A stretch of DNA of 64,000 nucleotides from Trichosphaerium sp. ATCC 40318 (lineage: Eukaryota; Protista; Tubulinea), in the NCBI GenBank assembly GCA_038496445.1, contig JALMLS010000341.1, positions 1-64,000 on the forward strand, given 5' to 3'. The notes beneath the pieces were generated by a model. That model was not told the origin of the DNA, did not search any database, and was given only the letters and a program-made list of their open reading frames with translations. Both the position numbers and the translations under genes were made by a program. The first letter of the stretch is position 1. Each line of letters begins with the position of its first letter. Below are positions 13,099-63,587 of this stretch, in pieces.

Positions 13099-13517
13099 GT
13101 AAAATAAGCTAGTGTCTAGCCAAAGTATATCCAGACGTAGCTACCACACTTACCGTTAGGTGGTCCTGTATGAACAAAGAAAAGGCACCACCTGCAGTGG
13201 CATGGTGTTCAAAATTTAGAGCATTTCAGGCTCTGTACATGCCTAGACTGAATCATTTTTACTTTATAGTTACGCTCACCTTTTCATAACCTCACAGATC
13301 AAAAGCCAACTAGGTTTCGAATGACGTTGCTATAATTGGAAAAATAGGAAATCACATTTACCACGCAACAGCCATACAAACGTATTATCACGTGAGATTT
13401 ATCTGACTCGCAACATTAGCATTCCTACAGCAACCAAACGATTAGCTTCAAGGGCTTAAGAATATCGTATCAAGCACTTTGAAACGATACCTTAAGTGGA
13501 TAGCCTTGCTACCAGTG

Positions 13518-13985
13518 CAAGGTTGTGTCTAGCTAACTCAAGGGGTAGTGGCTGACTTGCACTTCGCTCGTCTTGGTTTTCAAGTACGCTGTAGATTGAG
13601 TTAAGACTAACTCGAGGGTAGTGGCTCTCTTGGGCTTCGCTTGGTACTGGTTATTTTGAACGCTGTTTGATTGAATAGTGGAATTTAGTAAAATACAATG
13701 TAATACTGGCTAAATGTTATAAGCTAGTGCACTTGCACAGTTTCCTACCTCACACACAGGGTGATTACTCGAAATATGAAACTGTGGTTGATTGACTTCC
13801 AAACCAGAGAAAGGTTGTGTCTAGGTAACTTAGGGTAGTGGCTTGTGTAACGCTCCAGATGTATTACTCGAATTATCACGTGACTTAAACTTAAACTTGT
13901 ACTTAATAAACAGCTGTTTTACTTACTATCAACGCCGTTCCTCCAAAGAACCTTACAGCTGGCTTGAACTTCGCTGGTTCTTGGC
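13518..13985. repeat. Degenerate ~70-bp direct repeats, 3-4 partial copies
   Basis: AAGGTTGTGTCTAG-TAACT-AGGGTAGTGGCT at 13519 and 13811; CTAACTC-AGGG-TAGTGGCT..CTTCGCT..CGCTGT..GATTGA at ~13533 and ~13607. Confidence 0.65.
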
Positions 13986-14385: not shown

Positions 14386-14447
14386 GAAAAGGCAACACAT
14401 TACAGAACATTAGATCCCTGTAATGTTCTGTAATGTGTTGCCTTTTC
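14386..14447. repeat. Perfect inverted repeat: 27-bp stem, 8-nt loop
   Basis: GAAAAGGCAACACATTACAGAACATTA-gatccctg-TAATGTTCTGTAATGTGTTGCCTTTTC. Confidence 0.95.
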
Positions 14448-15029
14448 AAAAGAGCCAAAAGAGAATTGGCGTTTCTCCATGACCAACTGTCTAAAATACA
14501 CGGATACAATCAAGTCACTGCTGTATCAGCACAACTTGTATGCAATGACGTCTTACGTAGAAACTTTGGCATGTACAACACAAAACTTAAGGTCGAGTTG
14601 AGCTGAGCCAAGACGACTTCAAAAAACCATGTGTAAATAAATTCAATAAAACCAATTTTCCTTGTTTTTCTCATTTTATTTTAAATGCACAAACTTGTAT
14701 TGATGGCTAGGAGGGTTTATGCAACACAATCTGATGTTTGATCTGCTCTTGGTTTGATTTTGTTCAGAATGTTGGTTTTTTTTTGCGTCTAGACTCCGAA
14801 CCGATTTCAACATTGATATAGGCGTGGCATATGTTAAGTTTTACTTGAAAATGCCTTGCCTAACCATCAAACCTTCACGTGCATTAAATGGTGTTGCCAT
14901 CCAGGGCATGACGATACAATTTACGATCACGTTCACAATAGTTTTGAGTTTAGGCACTATTCGAAACGTGGTGGATTGAACCAAAACTGACTCTTTTTTA
15001 AAAAAATACTACAAGTTCGTAAAAGTCAT

Positions 15030-16037
15030 TTATAGTCCATTAAGTAATAACATGATAATAGCACAAAACAATAGAACACAAATCACACATAGCTCCCATA
15101 TCTGGCTTTGTTGTTCTGAAATAATTTTCTCGCTATCGCATACTTTTTGCTTGAGTGTGCGCACTTGCTCACATTCGAGAGCGTGTCCCCTTTTGTTGAA
15201 ATGTTTATGGAACACCTCTTTGCGTGATTTCAGTATCTCGACACGTACTGGCTGTGTTGCAGCGCGCTCATCACCACATTTAGAGGCTTGAGGGTGTAAG
15301 CCCTGCTTACAAGGCGGATTATGTGAGCACTTATTCCAATTGAAGTTGAAGTATCTATAAAACAGTTAACATTAACTTCACCAAGGGGAGATACAACATT
15401 AAATAAATAACGGGTTTTGGTTTTTTGTGCCGAATTTTTGACTTTTTTTTGACAAAATTCTACATATTTGGGCTTCCGCAAACACGTACTTTTTACCGTC
15501 AACTTTTCTCCAACCACTTTCGCGTTCCGAATGAGTAGACTCCCAGCATTGATAAACACAGTGTAGCTCAGATAAATACACATTACCGCGGTATACGCCT
15601 GGTAGCCATTTCCAATCTGTACCATCTTCATTGCGATCGTAGATTGATATACCATTTGTAGCGAGTGCAATATGCGTGATTGAGTACTTAATATCGCTGG
15701 CCGGCCTAATGAAGGGCCTGTTGTCGGTATTTTGGTACTTTCCATTGGCAGTGATGCATTCCAACGGATCCTCCCGCTTTTGCGTTAATAAGCAATTGAG
15801 CAAAATAGGCAGGTTTTTTAGTCCTATTTCTCTAGCATCGGGAGTGCAAGGGTCTCTTCCATTTTCGTTGTTACGTGCGTGTATGAACCATTCTCTTCCA
15901 GGGTAATGCCGACCCCTGCGGTAGCGTAATGCTTCAATTAAGGTCACTGTTGGTTTTTCATCTGTTTCTTTTTTGTAGAATAGAGTACCAGCCCATGCGC
16001 TGTTGTCAGTTTCTTGAAGAGAGTGTTCGCGTGCCAT
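15030..16037 (-). CDS. His-Cys-box (zf-His_Me_endon / I-PpoI-like) endonuclease-related protein, apparently catalytically degenerate, with C-terminal coiled coil and TM helix (290 aa, 2 exons)
   Basis: A phase-2 intron 15489-15355 (GTACGT..TTATAG) joins ORF 15399-16037 to the frame ending at 15030, giving ..KYSITHIALATNG..YLSELHCVYQCWESTHSERES..NWNKCSHNPPC..LCVICVLLFCAIIMLLLNGL*. Confidence 0.6.
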
Positions 16038-16462
16038 GTTGTTGTTGTTGTTGGGTTGGAAAATAAATGACTAGCCTCATGATTGATCAAGAGTGATTTT
16101 ATTCATGAGTTTTCAGTGATTGGTTTTTTTACATTTCGCTCACAAAGTTCGCTTAGAGTTATGAAACTAATGGCTTGGATTTTCAAGGGGAAAACAACTT
16201 GGCTTAGGCTTGGCCAAGGCAACATAAATACACTCTTTGTTAGGTTGTAAGTCTCCTGCACATATCACTTTACTTTCAAAGACAATAATATGGACGCTCC
16301 ATTCGAGGTATTGCTGCAACACAAGTAATCGAGTTGTTCATAGGTAACTAAGTGCTGTCATGGTGAACCGTCTTCAAAAGCTTTTCGTAGAAGCAACAAG
16401 GACTTAATAGACATAGCTTACAGTCTCAATAACAAACAAGCAAATATTAAACAATATTTTAA

Positions 16463-17386
16463 TCACATTACAATACATCCACGCTGTTTGCGTTTTGGTG
16501 GTACTGAAGCTTGGAGTTTATCAAATTTACAAATCTCTCTTACAACTTCATAAAACTGTTCATCAACATTGACACGTGTTTTGGCAGATGCTTCAAAAAA
16601 TACACATTCATTCTTTTGTGCAAGTTCCTTTCCTTCTTCTGTTGTTACTTGTCTATCTTCTTCCAAGTCCACTTTATTTCCCACTAGTACAATAGGAGCT
16701 CTGTCTGTATCTTTTACCCTGTACACAAACGCTTAGTTAAAAACTGTTTTCATTAATAATATCAAACAACTGTTGCTATTGTGGGTTACAACCAAATAGC
16801 CAGACCCAAGCATCTGTTTTTAACTATGTGAAAAAGTGGAAACTATCGAGATATTTTGAAAAGACTAGGGCAGGTTCGCTTTTGAGACAGTTTCAAGAAA
16901 TTTTGTGAAAAAGTGTCAAATTTTTTGAAAAGCGATGCCGTAGACTATTTCTGTTACCTGTAAATAACGTCAAAGAAGTTAGGCATCTCTTCAAATGATA
17001 GTCTGTCTGTGGTGCTATACATTAAAATAAAGCCTTGACCATGTCGAATATACTACAACCGTTAGAATATTCAGCTTGCTTAAGCGTTATTTAATTACCG
17101 AGTCACGCATACAAGAGAACTCTTCAGGTCCCGCTGTATCAAGAATATCAAGTAAGACAGGTTTGTCGTCTATGGTGACTTGCTTGCGATACCTTAGCGC
17201 GTGAGTGAGCGTTTAGAGTTTGTTTTAAGCTGTTTTCCTCCTTTTTACATTAAAACAGCAAAATACGTACGAATCTTCTATGGTTGGGTCGTATTCCTCT
17301 AGAAATACATTTTGAACGAGTTGTATTGTTGTTACTGATTTTCCAACGCCTCCAGGGCCCAATAAGACGATTTTATAGGTATTCAT
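16463..17386 (-). CDS. Ras-family small GTPase (4 exons) with a Q61P-equivalent substitution
   Basis: [17 protein letters not shown], effector [26 protein letters not shown], CaaX CIVM. Confidence 0.92.
16734..16826. mobile_element. Possible MITE-like insert in the last Ras intron
   Basis: 11-bp terminal inverted repeats TAGTTAAAAAC/GTTTTTAACTA with an internal hairpin (GCTATT..AATAGC); the intron is much longer than its neighbours. Confidence 0.3.
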
Positions 17387-38965: not shown

Positions 38966-40117
38966 CTAGTCTAGTAAAATGCGGCATAGAAGGCGGTGAC
39001 CTTGAATATATCTAAGCTCACCCAGGGTATCTTCATCATTCAATCTCTTTCCAATCGAAGGACTCACAACACTTAGTCCCATCTTCTGATACCCCATCGT
39101 ATGCTCCTCGAGTGGTTTATTGTAATAAACACGTAACTTTGATGGCGGAATACCTATTTTCATATAAAAAGCCTCCTTGACTTCCTCTATTGTACTGAAA
39201 TACGTGAACCCACGCAGAACTCTAAGTCCTTGGCTTGAATACATCCCAATAGTGACATCAATTTCTTTACCTTTAGAGACATCAAGAGAATACAAGCTAC
39301 GATTGACCTTGTCGTAAATGACATACACATCTGGGTTCTCGGAAACGCATATCTTGTCGATGTTTATGTCTGGCTCAAGGTACAACCAAACAAGGGTATT
39401 TTTGGTGTAGTCCAATACGCCAAGACCAGCATCACCGGCTCCAACCAAGACGTAAGAAGAATTTCGAGCTCGACACATTGTACAAGTTCCAGGGGCGATG
39501 AATGGTTGTACTCGCTTCTCGGTCATGTTGATTATAGCAAAGGAAGCGTTAGGAAGGCCAAGGACTGCCACATAGGTATCTTCACTTAGTACTAGGAATT
39601 CTTCGAAATCAAAAGGTACTTCGAAAGCAACACTTGTTTTTCCTCCTTCAACGTCAATCAGGGTTATCTTCTTCTCGTCTGTGTCACCAACAAACACTTT
39701 TCCGTTATCTGTTTGTACCAGTGTCTGGCTGTTGAAACAAGCCGACTCAGGAGTGCCAAAAGGTAGTGTAGAAACAGTCGCATCTTCGTTTTTGTCGGAA
39801 AATGAAATTTGACGAAAAGAGGTGTTCTTGGAATCCAAAACGTAGATGACATCTTTATCTTGATCGTAAACGAGGCCAGTAGGTTTACCAAAGCGTGCAG
39901 AGGTAGCTTCTCCGTCAGTTTTACCTTCGTCGGTTGGGTGACCCAATAGAGTTGTTTTAACGCCTTTGGCGTCTATCATTGTCACAGAGTTGTCGTTTGC
40001 GCAGGTGTAGATGATATTTTGTTTTCTGGACACCATACTTGATATTGAGGGTTTCTCATCATCTGTAAACGTGTATATTTTGTCTACAGTGTACATTAAA
40101 CCACCGTTGAAGCTCAT
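38966..40117 (-). CDS. Intronless NHL-like beta-propeller protein with a C-terminal ubiquitin-like domain
   Basis: DGEATSARFGKPTGLVYD..IYVLDSKNTSFRQI; C-terminal STIEEVKEAFYMKIGIPPSKLRVYY..LNDEDTLGEL. Confidence 0.75.
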   Translation of the reverse strand: MSFNGGLMYTVDKIYTFTDDEKPSISSMVSRKQNIIYTCANDNSVTMIDAKGVKTTLLGHPTDEGKTDGEATSARFGKPTGLVYDQDKDVIYVLDSKNTSFRQISFSDKNEDATVSTLPFGTPESACFNSQTLVQTDNGKVFVGDTDEKKITLIDVEGGKTSVAFEVPFDFEEFLVLSEDTYVAVLGLPNASFAIINMTEKRVQPFIAPGTCTMCRARNSSYVLVGAGDAGLGVLDYTKNTLVWLYLEPDINIDKICVSENPDVYVIYDKVNRSLYSLDVSKGKEIDVTIGMYSSQGLRVLRGFTYFSTIEEVKEAFYMKIGIPPSKLRVYYNKPLEEHTMGYQKMGLSVVSPSIGKRLNDEDTLGELRYIQGHRLLCRILLD

Positions 40118-51227: not shown

Positions 51228-52279
51228 ATGCACCATGTTTACCCTATTGCTCCCAAATGCACTGTACGTAATTTTAAACATAGTATCACTTTCCTGTTAA
51301 TACTAAATAGAAATGTACTGCAATACAAGAAGTTATATGCATACTGGACCTTCCAGTGGAGCTACAACTTGATATTATGGACTTAGACAATGAAGTATAT
51401 CTAATTTGGCCTCTGTTAGCATCAACAACGGCAACAGCAACAAGATTTGATTGTGATATGAACAAACATGGGAAATGGCAAAGAAAAAGTAGTACGACTG
51501 TACAACTTTTAAAGCAGGAGAATTGGAACCATGGTAAACGAAATGGAGAGTTTAAAGAGTGGAGAAAGAATGGTAATATATCTAAACAGTATCAATGTAT
51601 AGATGACAAAAGAGAAGGAGAGTACAAGTCATGGCACTATAATGGACAACTGAGTACTAAGAGTTACTATGTCAATGGTAAGCAAGAAGGAGATGAAAAA
51701 AAGTGGCGTCAGGATGGTCAATTGTTTAGGCAATATCAGTATGTTAATGGGAAACGACAAGGTTGTTTAAAATCATGGCATACTAATGGTCAATTGTCTT
51801 TGGAGTGTTACTATGTTGATGATAAGCAAGAAGGAGTTGAAAAGCAGTGGTATAATAGTGGTAGTATACGTGAGGAGTCACATTACGTTAATGATAATAA
51901 AGAAGGAGAATACAAGTTCTGGTATAGGAATAGTCAATTATGTATTCATTGTCATTTTGTTAATGATAAGAAAAAAGGACCGTATAAAGAGTGGAACAAA
52001 CTTGGTTTTTTGATAAAGCAATGTCATTACTACAATGATAAAATAGAAGGAGCGGTAGAGCATTGGCTTAATGGTAGATTATGGAAGCGATTTGAATATG
52101 TCAATGATAAAATGCATGGAGATTACAAGTGTTGGAATTCAAATAGCCAACTTATTGGCCAGTGTAATTATGTAAATGGCAAAATGCATGGAAAGTTTAA
52201 AGAGTGGCTTAGCAATGGCGAACTGCGACTTCACTACTTCGTTAATGGTAAACGAACACAAGAACAAAGCAACGATTAG
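51228..52279 (+). CDS. F-box-like motif + MORN-variant (YwqK-like) repeat protein
   Basis: Exon 1 MHHVYPIAPKCT, intron 51264-51310, then ILDLPVELQLDIMDLD and ~11 repeats of YVNGKxEGExKxWxxNGQL. Confidence 0.75.
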
Positions 52280-62100: not shown

Positions 62101-63587
62101 CTGCTGACATTGCCAAACGATATTCAACTTTACATATGCTCGCTCGATAAAGAAGTTTACATAAAATATCACCTACTGTCTACTGCAGCTGCTAAAAACA
62201 CTCACTTTACGAATGATTTTAGAAAAAAGGGTATCTGGAAGCGGTGGTATTCAACAGGAGAGTTAAAACGCATGATTCAACTACCTGTTGGCGAGATAAA
62301 ACAATGGTATAAAAACGGACAACTTCAGGCGCATTACTACCATATATACGGAAAGCATGCTTTAGCAGCTGCAGTATCAATTGTTCTATTTACAAGGCAA
62401 ACTTCATGGTGAGAGAAAGAAGTGGCACTCAAATGGGCAGATTGTTAAACAAAGCTTCTTTGAAAATGGAAAAAGGACAGGAAAGCATCAAGAGTGGCAC
62501 GAAAACGGACAGGTAGCACAAGGAATGCTGAAAAACGACAAGTATGAAGGAATACTCCAAAAGTGGTATGAAAATGGTAATATGAAAGCATATACAAGCG
62601 TCACAGATGGAATAAAAGAAGGTGAAATGAAAGAGTGGTATGAAAATGGCAAACTAAAGATACACTACTTTCGTCAATGCAAAAAAGTGGCGAGGTTTGA
62701 AGAATATTTTGAGAATGGAAACCTTAAATCTTGTTTGTTCTTCGAAGATAGCACAGATGACTTCTATAACCAAGAGATGATCAAAGAAGGTAACATTAAA
62801 ACTATTAATGGCAAACAATGTCTAAAAGAAACGCACTACCACGAAAATGGAACAAGAAAATTAGAAAAATTCTGTTGCAATGGTAAGCCTTACGGCACTG
62901 CAAAACAGTGGAATGAAGATGGCCAAATTACATCTTGTGTTGAGGTAAAGAATGGCATACCGTATGGCAAGAGTGTCATGTACAAAGATGGATTAATAAG
63001 ATAAAAAGCGCTATGTTTAAGAACGGAAAGAAGAATGGTAAATACAAGGAGTGGCATGAAAATACTCAACTTGCGTTGCGTATTATATTGATGATGTGAT
63101 GGAAGGACTAGTGGAAAAATGGTATGAAAATGGACAAATGAAACAGGTTTATACGATTCACAATGGCAAAAAAGAAGGAGAACGTAATGCTGGTACAGTA
63201 ATGGACAGTTATCATCAACGATTTTGGAAACACGGCTTAGAACATGGAGAATGTAGACAATGGTATGAAAATGGTAAACTACAAGTACGGTATGAAGCAA
63301 AGAATGGTAAAACGGCAGGAAAGTATGAAGAGTTCTACGACAATGGACAACTACGCAAGCGCTTCTACAAATGGGATGATAAAGTACAAGGCGAAGTAAA
63401 ACGTTGGCACAGGAATGGACAGTTGTATTTACAGTTTTATGTAAAAGGCAGTATTCCTCATGGAGAAGAAAAAGAGTGGCATCCCAATGAACAAATGAGA
63501 CGATGTTTGACTCGTGTCAATGGAGAAGCTGAAGTTTACTTAGGATGTGTGGTCAAATTTACGTTAAGAATGTATTCTACTTCATGA
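62101..63587 (+). pseudogene. F-box-like + MORN-variant repeat gene disrupted by several frameshifts
   Basis: LLTLPNDIQLYICSLDKEVY (paralogous to 51228-52279); repeat frame switches near 62365, 63002, 63080, 63187 and 63215. Confidence 0.7.

Follow-up and report, generated by a model that had tools for sequence, protein, structure and literature searches.

We identified a probable gene on the minus strand that is predicted to be spliced from two exons and to encode a protein of 290 amino acids. Computation on the window, by which we mean the whole stretch of DNA that was analysed (64,000 nucleotides), yields an open reading frame extended by an in-phase intron, a coding signal in both exons, a transmembrane helix at the C-terminus of the product, and no relatives. 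We lean towards reading this locus as a lineage-restricted gene for a tail-anchored protein, whose cytosolic domain carries a probable zinc-binding cluster of cysteine and histidine residues and which would serve as a membrane-attached adaptor. Zinc binding, topology and any function we infer from the amino acid sequence. An initial annotation of the same DNA had described the product as a membrane-anchored descendant of the His-Cys-box homing endonucleases. Features of the gene, of its product and of the surrounding DNA are listed in Table 1 and described below.

Table 1. Positions of the gene, of segments of its product and of neighbouring features in the 64-kb window
Feature	Positions	Strand	Description
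Upstream out-of-frame ORF	15944..16090	minus	25 codons from an ATG at about 16079, running over the main start
Exon 1 (predicted)	15490..16037	minus	548 nt; residues 1–182 and two bases of codon 183
Predicted intron	15355..15489	minus	135 nt; GTACGT...TTTTATAG; phase 2; acceptor TTTTATAG at 15356–15355
Exon 2 (predicted)	15030..15354	minus	325 nt; residues 183–290 and TAA stop at 15030–15032
First Cys/His cluster	15516..15572	minus	S156-E-L-H-C-V-Y-Q-C164-W-E-S-T-H169-S-E-R-E173-S174
Second Cys/His cluster	15309..15329	minus	C192-S-H-N-P-P-C198
Juxtamembrane helix	15102..15173	minus	residues 244–267; AlphaFold2 on exon 2
C-terminal transmembrane segment	15042..15101	minus	residues 268–287, followed by N-G-L and stop
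Stretch resembling a cell-wall-binding/CROP repeat	15480–15524	minus	S-G-W-R-K-V-D-G-K-K-Y-F-N-F-N, across the splice junction
(CAA)5 microsatellite	16037–16053		directly 5' of the main ATG
Imperfect inverted repeat	15024–15039 and 16057–16072		16 nt; 14/16 complementary
Ras/Rap-like GTPase gene	16463–17386	minus	three introns
Hairpin	14386–14447		27-nt arms in perfect inverted repeat (GAAAAGGCAACACATTACAGAACATTA and its reverse complement); loop of 8 nt
Direct repeats, first pair	13511–13543 and 13803–13835		33 nt; 85% alike; spacing 292 nt
Direct repeats, second pair	13543–13568 and 13616–13641		26 nt; 85%; 73 nt apart
ORF without homologue	38969–40117	minus	383 amino acids; complete
MORN_2-variant-rich ORF	51356–52276	plus	Pfam E = 3.5e-21
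MORN_2-variant-rich ORF	62381–63001	plus	Pfam E = 9e-24

The gene begins within a minus-strand open reading frame of 212 codons, which can be read from the ATG at position 16037 to a TAA at 15399–15401. This ATG is the first to follow an in-frame TAG located 13 codons upstream. Open stretches of at least 212 codons have a chance expectation of 0.01 per window, as estimated from 200 simulated sequences of 64 kb that share the dinucleotide composition of the window. The initial annotation had proposed one intron and a spliced product of 290 amino acids. Joining the two exons in silico at 15490|15354 does keep the frame and adds 108 codons, giving a product of exactly this length. The frame of exon 2 is closed by an in-frame TAA at 15366–15368, five codons upstream of the acceptor.

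Codon usage agrees with this gene model. Log-odds scores trained on the Pfam-supported ORFs of the window and on the exons of a neighbouring Ras-like gene give exon 1 a value of +0.12 and exon 2 one of +0.11 in the proposed frames, and negative values in the other five frames. The values of both exons fall inside the range of the training ORFs when each of these is scored by leave-one-out (-0.03 to +0.32), whereas the predicted intron has negative values except in a single frame, where the value is close to zero. The Ras-like gene also provides a local standard for splice sites. Its three introns, reconstructed from conserved Ras protein sequence, are about 60 to 270 nucleotides long, with the donors GTACGT, GTAATT and GTAACA and the acceptors TAAG, GTAG and ACAG. 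The donor hexamer of the predicted intron is the same as that of the first Ras intron. The predicted intron fits those of the adjacent gene, and we predict from the sequence that it is spliced and that the gene is expressed. Together, the length of the open reading frame, its codon usage, the phase of the intron and the Ras-identical donor argue for a real gene. The free-standing two-exon gene that had been claimed agrees with all of these features and is probably real.

The same features weigh against the idea that the locus is non-functional, and holds a chance or decaying reading frame, either young and de novo or left over from a degraded insertion, with splice sites that are usable by accident. 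So long a stretch would rarely arise by chance, both exons carry a coding signal confined to the proposed frame, and the intron is in phase and opens with a consensus donor. Such a reading draws on the upstream ORF that runs over the main start codon, on the failure of AlphaFold2 to find a fold in exon 1, and on the low recognition value that a protein language model gives the sequence (1316). It also draws on the imperfect inverted repeat that brackets the coding region, although this repeat is of a quality expected by chance and shows no target-site duplication. We consider a non-functional reading frame unlikely, though worth some weight. The upstream ORF also counts against our own preferred reading as a tail-anchored orphan, and so does the finding that both Cys/His clusters lie at a spacing close to that of the homing endonuclease I-PpoI, which is improbable under shuffling.

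Two further observations concern these flanking features. The upstream ORF, together with the (CAA)5 microsatellite beside the main ATG, might limit translation of the main ORF. The inverted repeat was considered as the termini of a TIR element, and this was rejected on the missing target-site duplication and on the finding that about a dozen pairs of equal quality occur per 5-kb region.

Searches for relatives of the protein were uniformly negative. Exon 1 (182 amino acids) has no match in a word-indexed protein search and no relative in the metagenome contigs that were scanned, and an exhaustive phmmer search of 1.84 billion representative proteins is empty for it at E ≤ 0.001. No paralogue is found in the window by tblastn, and an exact-product look-up of the unspliced 212-residue ORF finds no called gene on record. 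Pfam, NCBIfam and PHROGs contain no family for exon 1 or exon 2. The only sub-threshold rows are at chance level, with TANGO6_N at E = 0.037 (13.6 bits, where the cut-off is 27) and phospholamban at E = 0.71, and PDB sequence searches with the exons recover only chance-level helical similarity. Conservation is seen in no other genome, so that selection on this orphan gene is not demonstrable, which also counts against our preferred reading.

The lack of homologues in protein and metagenome searches would also suit a non-functional reading frame, but the gene is not alone in this respect. A complete ORF of 383 amino acids elsewhere in the window has only sub-threshold NHL, beta-propeller and ubiquitin rows in Pfam, and the word-indexed protein search gives it no homologue at E ≤ 1e-5. 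The absence of a homologue for this ORF and the presence of two neighbouring ORFs that are not on record indicate a poorly sampled lineage. Orphan ORFs seem common here, and orphan status is unremarkable in itself.

The clearest structural feature of the product is its C-terminus. Residues 268–287 form the sole hydrophobic stretch of 19 residues in the protein (its Kyte-Doolittle average over 19 residues peaks at 2.9), and the 290-residue product has no N-terminal hydrophobic signal. An AlphaFold2 model of exon 2 shows one continuous helix from residue 244 to residue 289, with a pLDDT of 73–97 over the last 30–40 residues. Within this helix the juxtamembrane portion begins at a block-mean pLDDT of about 62 and ends at 87, and the transmembrane segment is helical at about 87–97. 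The part of the same model that contains the C-x-H-x3-C motif is unconfident. A tail anchor had been claimed by the initial annotation, and the single hydrophobic segment, lying three residues from the C-terminus and modelled as a confident helix, bears this out. A coiled coil had been placed ahead of the anchor; the helix is recovered in the model, but AlphaFold2 does not establish a coiled coil.

Tail-anchored proteins are inserted into membranes post-translationally by a GET/TRC40-type route. Given the predicted splice, the product has a single C-terminal transmembrane segment and no other hydrophobic segment, which is the pattern that defines tail-anchored proteins. Like them, it lacks an N-terminal signal and would combine a cytosolic N-terminal domain with a juxtamembrane helix and a lone transmembrane segment near the C-terminus. 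This resemblance is one of topology, as tail-anchored proteins are a topological class and not a homologous family. Profile searches give no match to SNARE, cytochrome b5, Bcl-2 or other known tail-anchored families.

The second prominent feature is a stretch of 40 residues that holds seven cysteine and histidine residues in two clusters, one on either side of the splice junction. The motifs S-E-L-H-C-x3-C-x4-H-x3-E-S and C-S-H-N-P-P-C, on which the initial annotation was built, both read as written. Taken by itself, the bare C-x-H-x3-C motif recurs at eight further places when the window is translated in six frames. When the protein is shuffled, a generic spacing of six ligands appears with P = 4e-4 per protein. 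The exact joint pattern of the two clusters appears in 0 of 200,000 shuffles, a count to be read knowing that the pattern was defined after being seen, among very many windows and with one of many templates. The Cys/His residues are thus clustered beyond random scatter and, since such a spacing is unlikely for randomly placed residues, some form of zinc site is plausible from the sequence. The candidate ligands are H159/C160, C164 and H169 in the first cluster and C192, H194 and C198 in the second.

These candidate ligands lie at a spacing similar to that of the zinc ligands of I-PpoI. I-PpoI is a His-Cys-box enzyme of 163 amino acids in which His98 is the general base and Asn119 is the metal ligand. 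It binds zinc at two sites, one formed by Cys41, Cys100, Cys105 and His110 and the other by Cys125, Cys132, His134 and Cys138. The two proteins share the arrangement [C/H][C/H]-x3-C-x4-H-x3-E-S followed, some 18–19 residues on, by C-x-H-x3-C. In contrast to I-PpoI, the gene described here is a free-standing spliced gene and does not lie inside a group I intron of rDNA; in keeping with the initial annotation, which saw neither rDNA nor a group I intron, the window contains no Rfam family and no tRNA. Moreover, its product has 290 residues and a C-terminal membrane anchor, compared with the 163 residues of I-PpoI.

This likeness could mean that the Cys/His region is a badly decayed, nuclease-dead His-Cys-box domain, kept as a zinc-stabilised module for binding DNA or protein and carried on the tail anchor. 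Its ligand spacing and E-S pair match I-PpoI residues 100–138 except for a shift of one residue. The initial annotation had described the spacing as free of gaps, which is true only of the first 19 residues, as the interval between E-S and C-x-H-x3-C exceeds that of I-PpoI by one residue. In the register so defined, the hallmark positions Ser97, Leu99, Cys105, His110, Glu114 and Ser115 of I-PpoI are kept. Cys100, a zinc ligand, and His101 are swapped, their counterparts being H159 and C160. The conserved Asn107, Pro108 and Leu111 are lost, and a Gly stands at the place of the conserved Arg122. His98 is replaced by Glu157, Asn119 by Lys178 and the zinc ligand Cys125 by Phe185. The replacement of the general base, the swapped pair and the missing metal ligand had all been pointed out before and are seen in this register, whereas the Phe185 substitution is an additional loss. 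A counterpart of Cys41 is only a guess, the choices being C64, C82 and C94.

The statistical weight of these matches depends on how they are counted. Under strict matching 6 of the 15 hallmarks are present (P = 0.02 per protein in composition shuffles, for a pattern that was picked post hoc). If cysteine and histidine are treated as interchangeable the count rises to 8/15, with P = 3.5e-4 per protein. Values of 1e-2 to 1e-4 per protein are expected to recur in any proteome, several times.

Alignment offers a different picture of the same region. In a Smith-Waterman comparison of the whole protein with an I-PpoI fragment, the best alignment pairs C164-W-E-S with C112-W-E-S and not the residues of the ungapped register. 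Its score of 38 is reached by 267 of 5000 shuffles of the whole protein and by 224 of 5000 shuffles of the domain (p of about 0.05). The ungapped register proposed earlier yields a score of 11 across 19 residues, which drops to -13 across 31. In the C-W-E-S register there is no histidine at the place of the general base, and Glu171 occupies the position of Asn119. Two rival registers, both weak, make up a chance-like picture.

We also searched for the His-Cys-box family with profiles. A 71-residue stretch across the splice junction was used as the domain query, as the domain would straddle the intron. At E ≤ 10, neither this stretch nor exon 1 or exon 2 has a Pfam match to PF05551 (zf-His_Me_endon). 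A positive control of 50 amino acids (I-PpoI residues 97–146, verified as identical to the same residues of PDB 1A73) matches PF05551 at E = 2e-6 with 28.4 bits, which is only slightly above the cut-off of 27 bits, so that the profile is weak for decayed members of the family. I-PpoI is likewise absent from the phmmer matches of the 71-residue stretch to the PDB at E ≤ 10 and from further PDB sequence searches. A single-sequence AlphaFold2 model of exon 1 has a mean pLDDT of 31.8 and no residue above 50, too poor to serve for a comparison of folds. A distant kinship with a known family, His-Me fingers among them, therefore keeps some likelihood and weighs against our preferred reading.

The proposed descent from a His-Cys-box enzyme therefore found no backing: PF05551, the PDB and pairwise alignment give no significant match, and the equivalents of His98, Asn119 and Cys125 are gone. 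As these tests have low power against a badly decayed relic, homology is better described as unproven than as refuted. We regard a decayed His-Cys-box domain as improbable, and we are similarly doubtful that such a scaffold was taken over from mobile His-Cys-box genes and then joined to a tail anchor. The functions that the initial annotation suggested for it, as a DNA tether, a sensor or a regulator released on activation, are speculative.

A degraded fold of this kind in a host protein does have a precedent. The MH1 domain of SMAD proteins is termed 'a degraded homing endonuclease' (Grishin 2001), as reviewed in PMC3384342. According to the same review, the link between MH1 and I-PpoI is structural, with 16% identity over 78 aligned residues (PMC3384342). 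Were the Cys/His region a relic, it would resemble MH1 in having given up catalysis while the His-Cys-box fold stayed on in the host as a binding module. However, MH1 is tied to I-PpoI by structure, while the Cys/His region here is modelled without confidence. MH1 proteins also lack a tail anchor: they are soluble and shuttle into the nucleus.

We considered whether the N-terminal domain is a very divergent form of a known fold, of the TLDc type or another, that sequence methods miss. TLDc clusters rank at the top of protein-language-model searches with exon 1 and with residues 120–182 (97 and 99/100 hits). Their scores of 0.86–0.87, with only 111–146 shared features, are in a range that shuffled proteins also reach, and Pfam TLD (PF07534) gives no match at E ≤ 10. 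A hidden fold of this sort is highly improbable.

A short stretch across the junction resembles one cell-wall-binding/CROP repeat (Table 1), and the 71-residue query matches only clostridial repeat proteins with TcdA-type repeats in the PDB. We rejected a CROP-repeat identity for this stretch: it occurs as a single copy, the independent E-value of each single-repeat match is 6.8 or worse, and the low total E-values arise from summation over many repeats in the targets. The stretch is present whether or not the intron is spliced, with K-Y following D-G-K in both readings.

The gene sits between ordinary genes, 425 nucleotides downstream of the Ras-like gene and on the same strand. The Ras/Rap-like GTPase has the P-loop G-P-G-G-V-G-K-S, a switch II sequence of D-T-A-G-P in place of D-T-A-G-Q, and the C-terminus C-I-V-M. 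Two ORFs rich in MORN_2 variants are found on the plus strand farther along the window. On the other side of the gene a perfect hairpin lies 583 nucleotides beyond the stop codon, and its arm is found nowhere else in the window. Two pairs of direct repeats follow, which could be a partial tandem duplication or the remnants of a small repeat element. The initial annotation had raised the possibility that gene, hairpin and repeats form a joint system. We rejected this association, as the hairpin arm is unique and 583 nucleotides away, and no feature connects either the hairpin or the repeats to the gene.

In the reading that we favour, the locus is a lineage-restricted nuclear gene from a eukaryote whose relatives are poorly sampled, and its two exons would yield a tail-anchored membrane protein of 290 residues. 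The N-terminal part of this protein, about 265 residues, would lie on the cytosolic side, and the helix formed by residues 244–267 would run on into the single transmembrane helix of residues 268–287 at the extreme C-terminus. Insertion into the membrane would occur post-translationally by a GET/TRC40-type route. The 40-residue Cys/His stretch probably binds zinc, to judge by its ligand spacing, and the zinc module would engage a partner, so that the protein may act as a membrane-attached adaptor or scaffold. The likeness to I-PpoI would then be a coincidence of spacing; at the most, small zinc sites would have converged.

If the region were instead a true decayed His-Cys-box domain, it would represent a second independent domestication of this nuclease fold by a host after SMAD MH1, and the first membrane-tethered case of that domesticated fold. 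Even so, it would be a variant of an event that has a precedent in SMAD MH1 (PMC3384342). A practical lesson is that a match in ligand spacing, with every catalytic residue 'lost', is not evidence of homology. As it stands, the gene adds one to the lineage-specific genes of a sparsely sampled eukaryotic branch.
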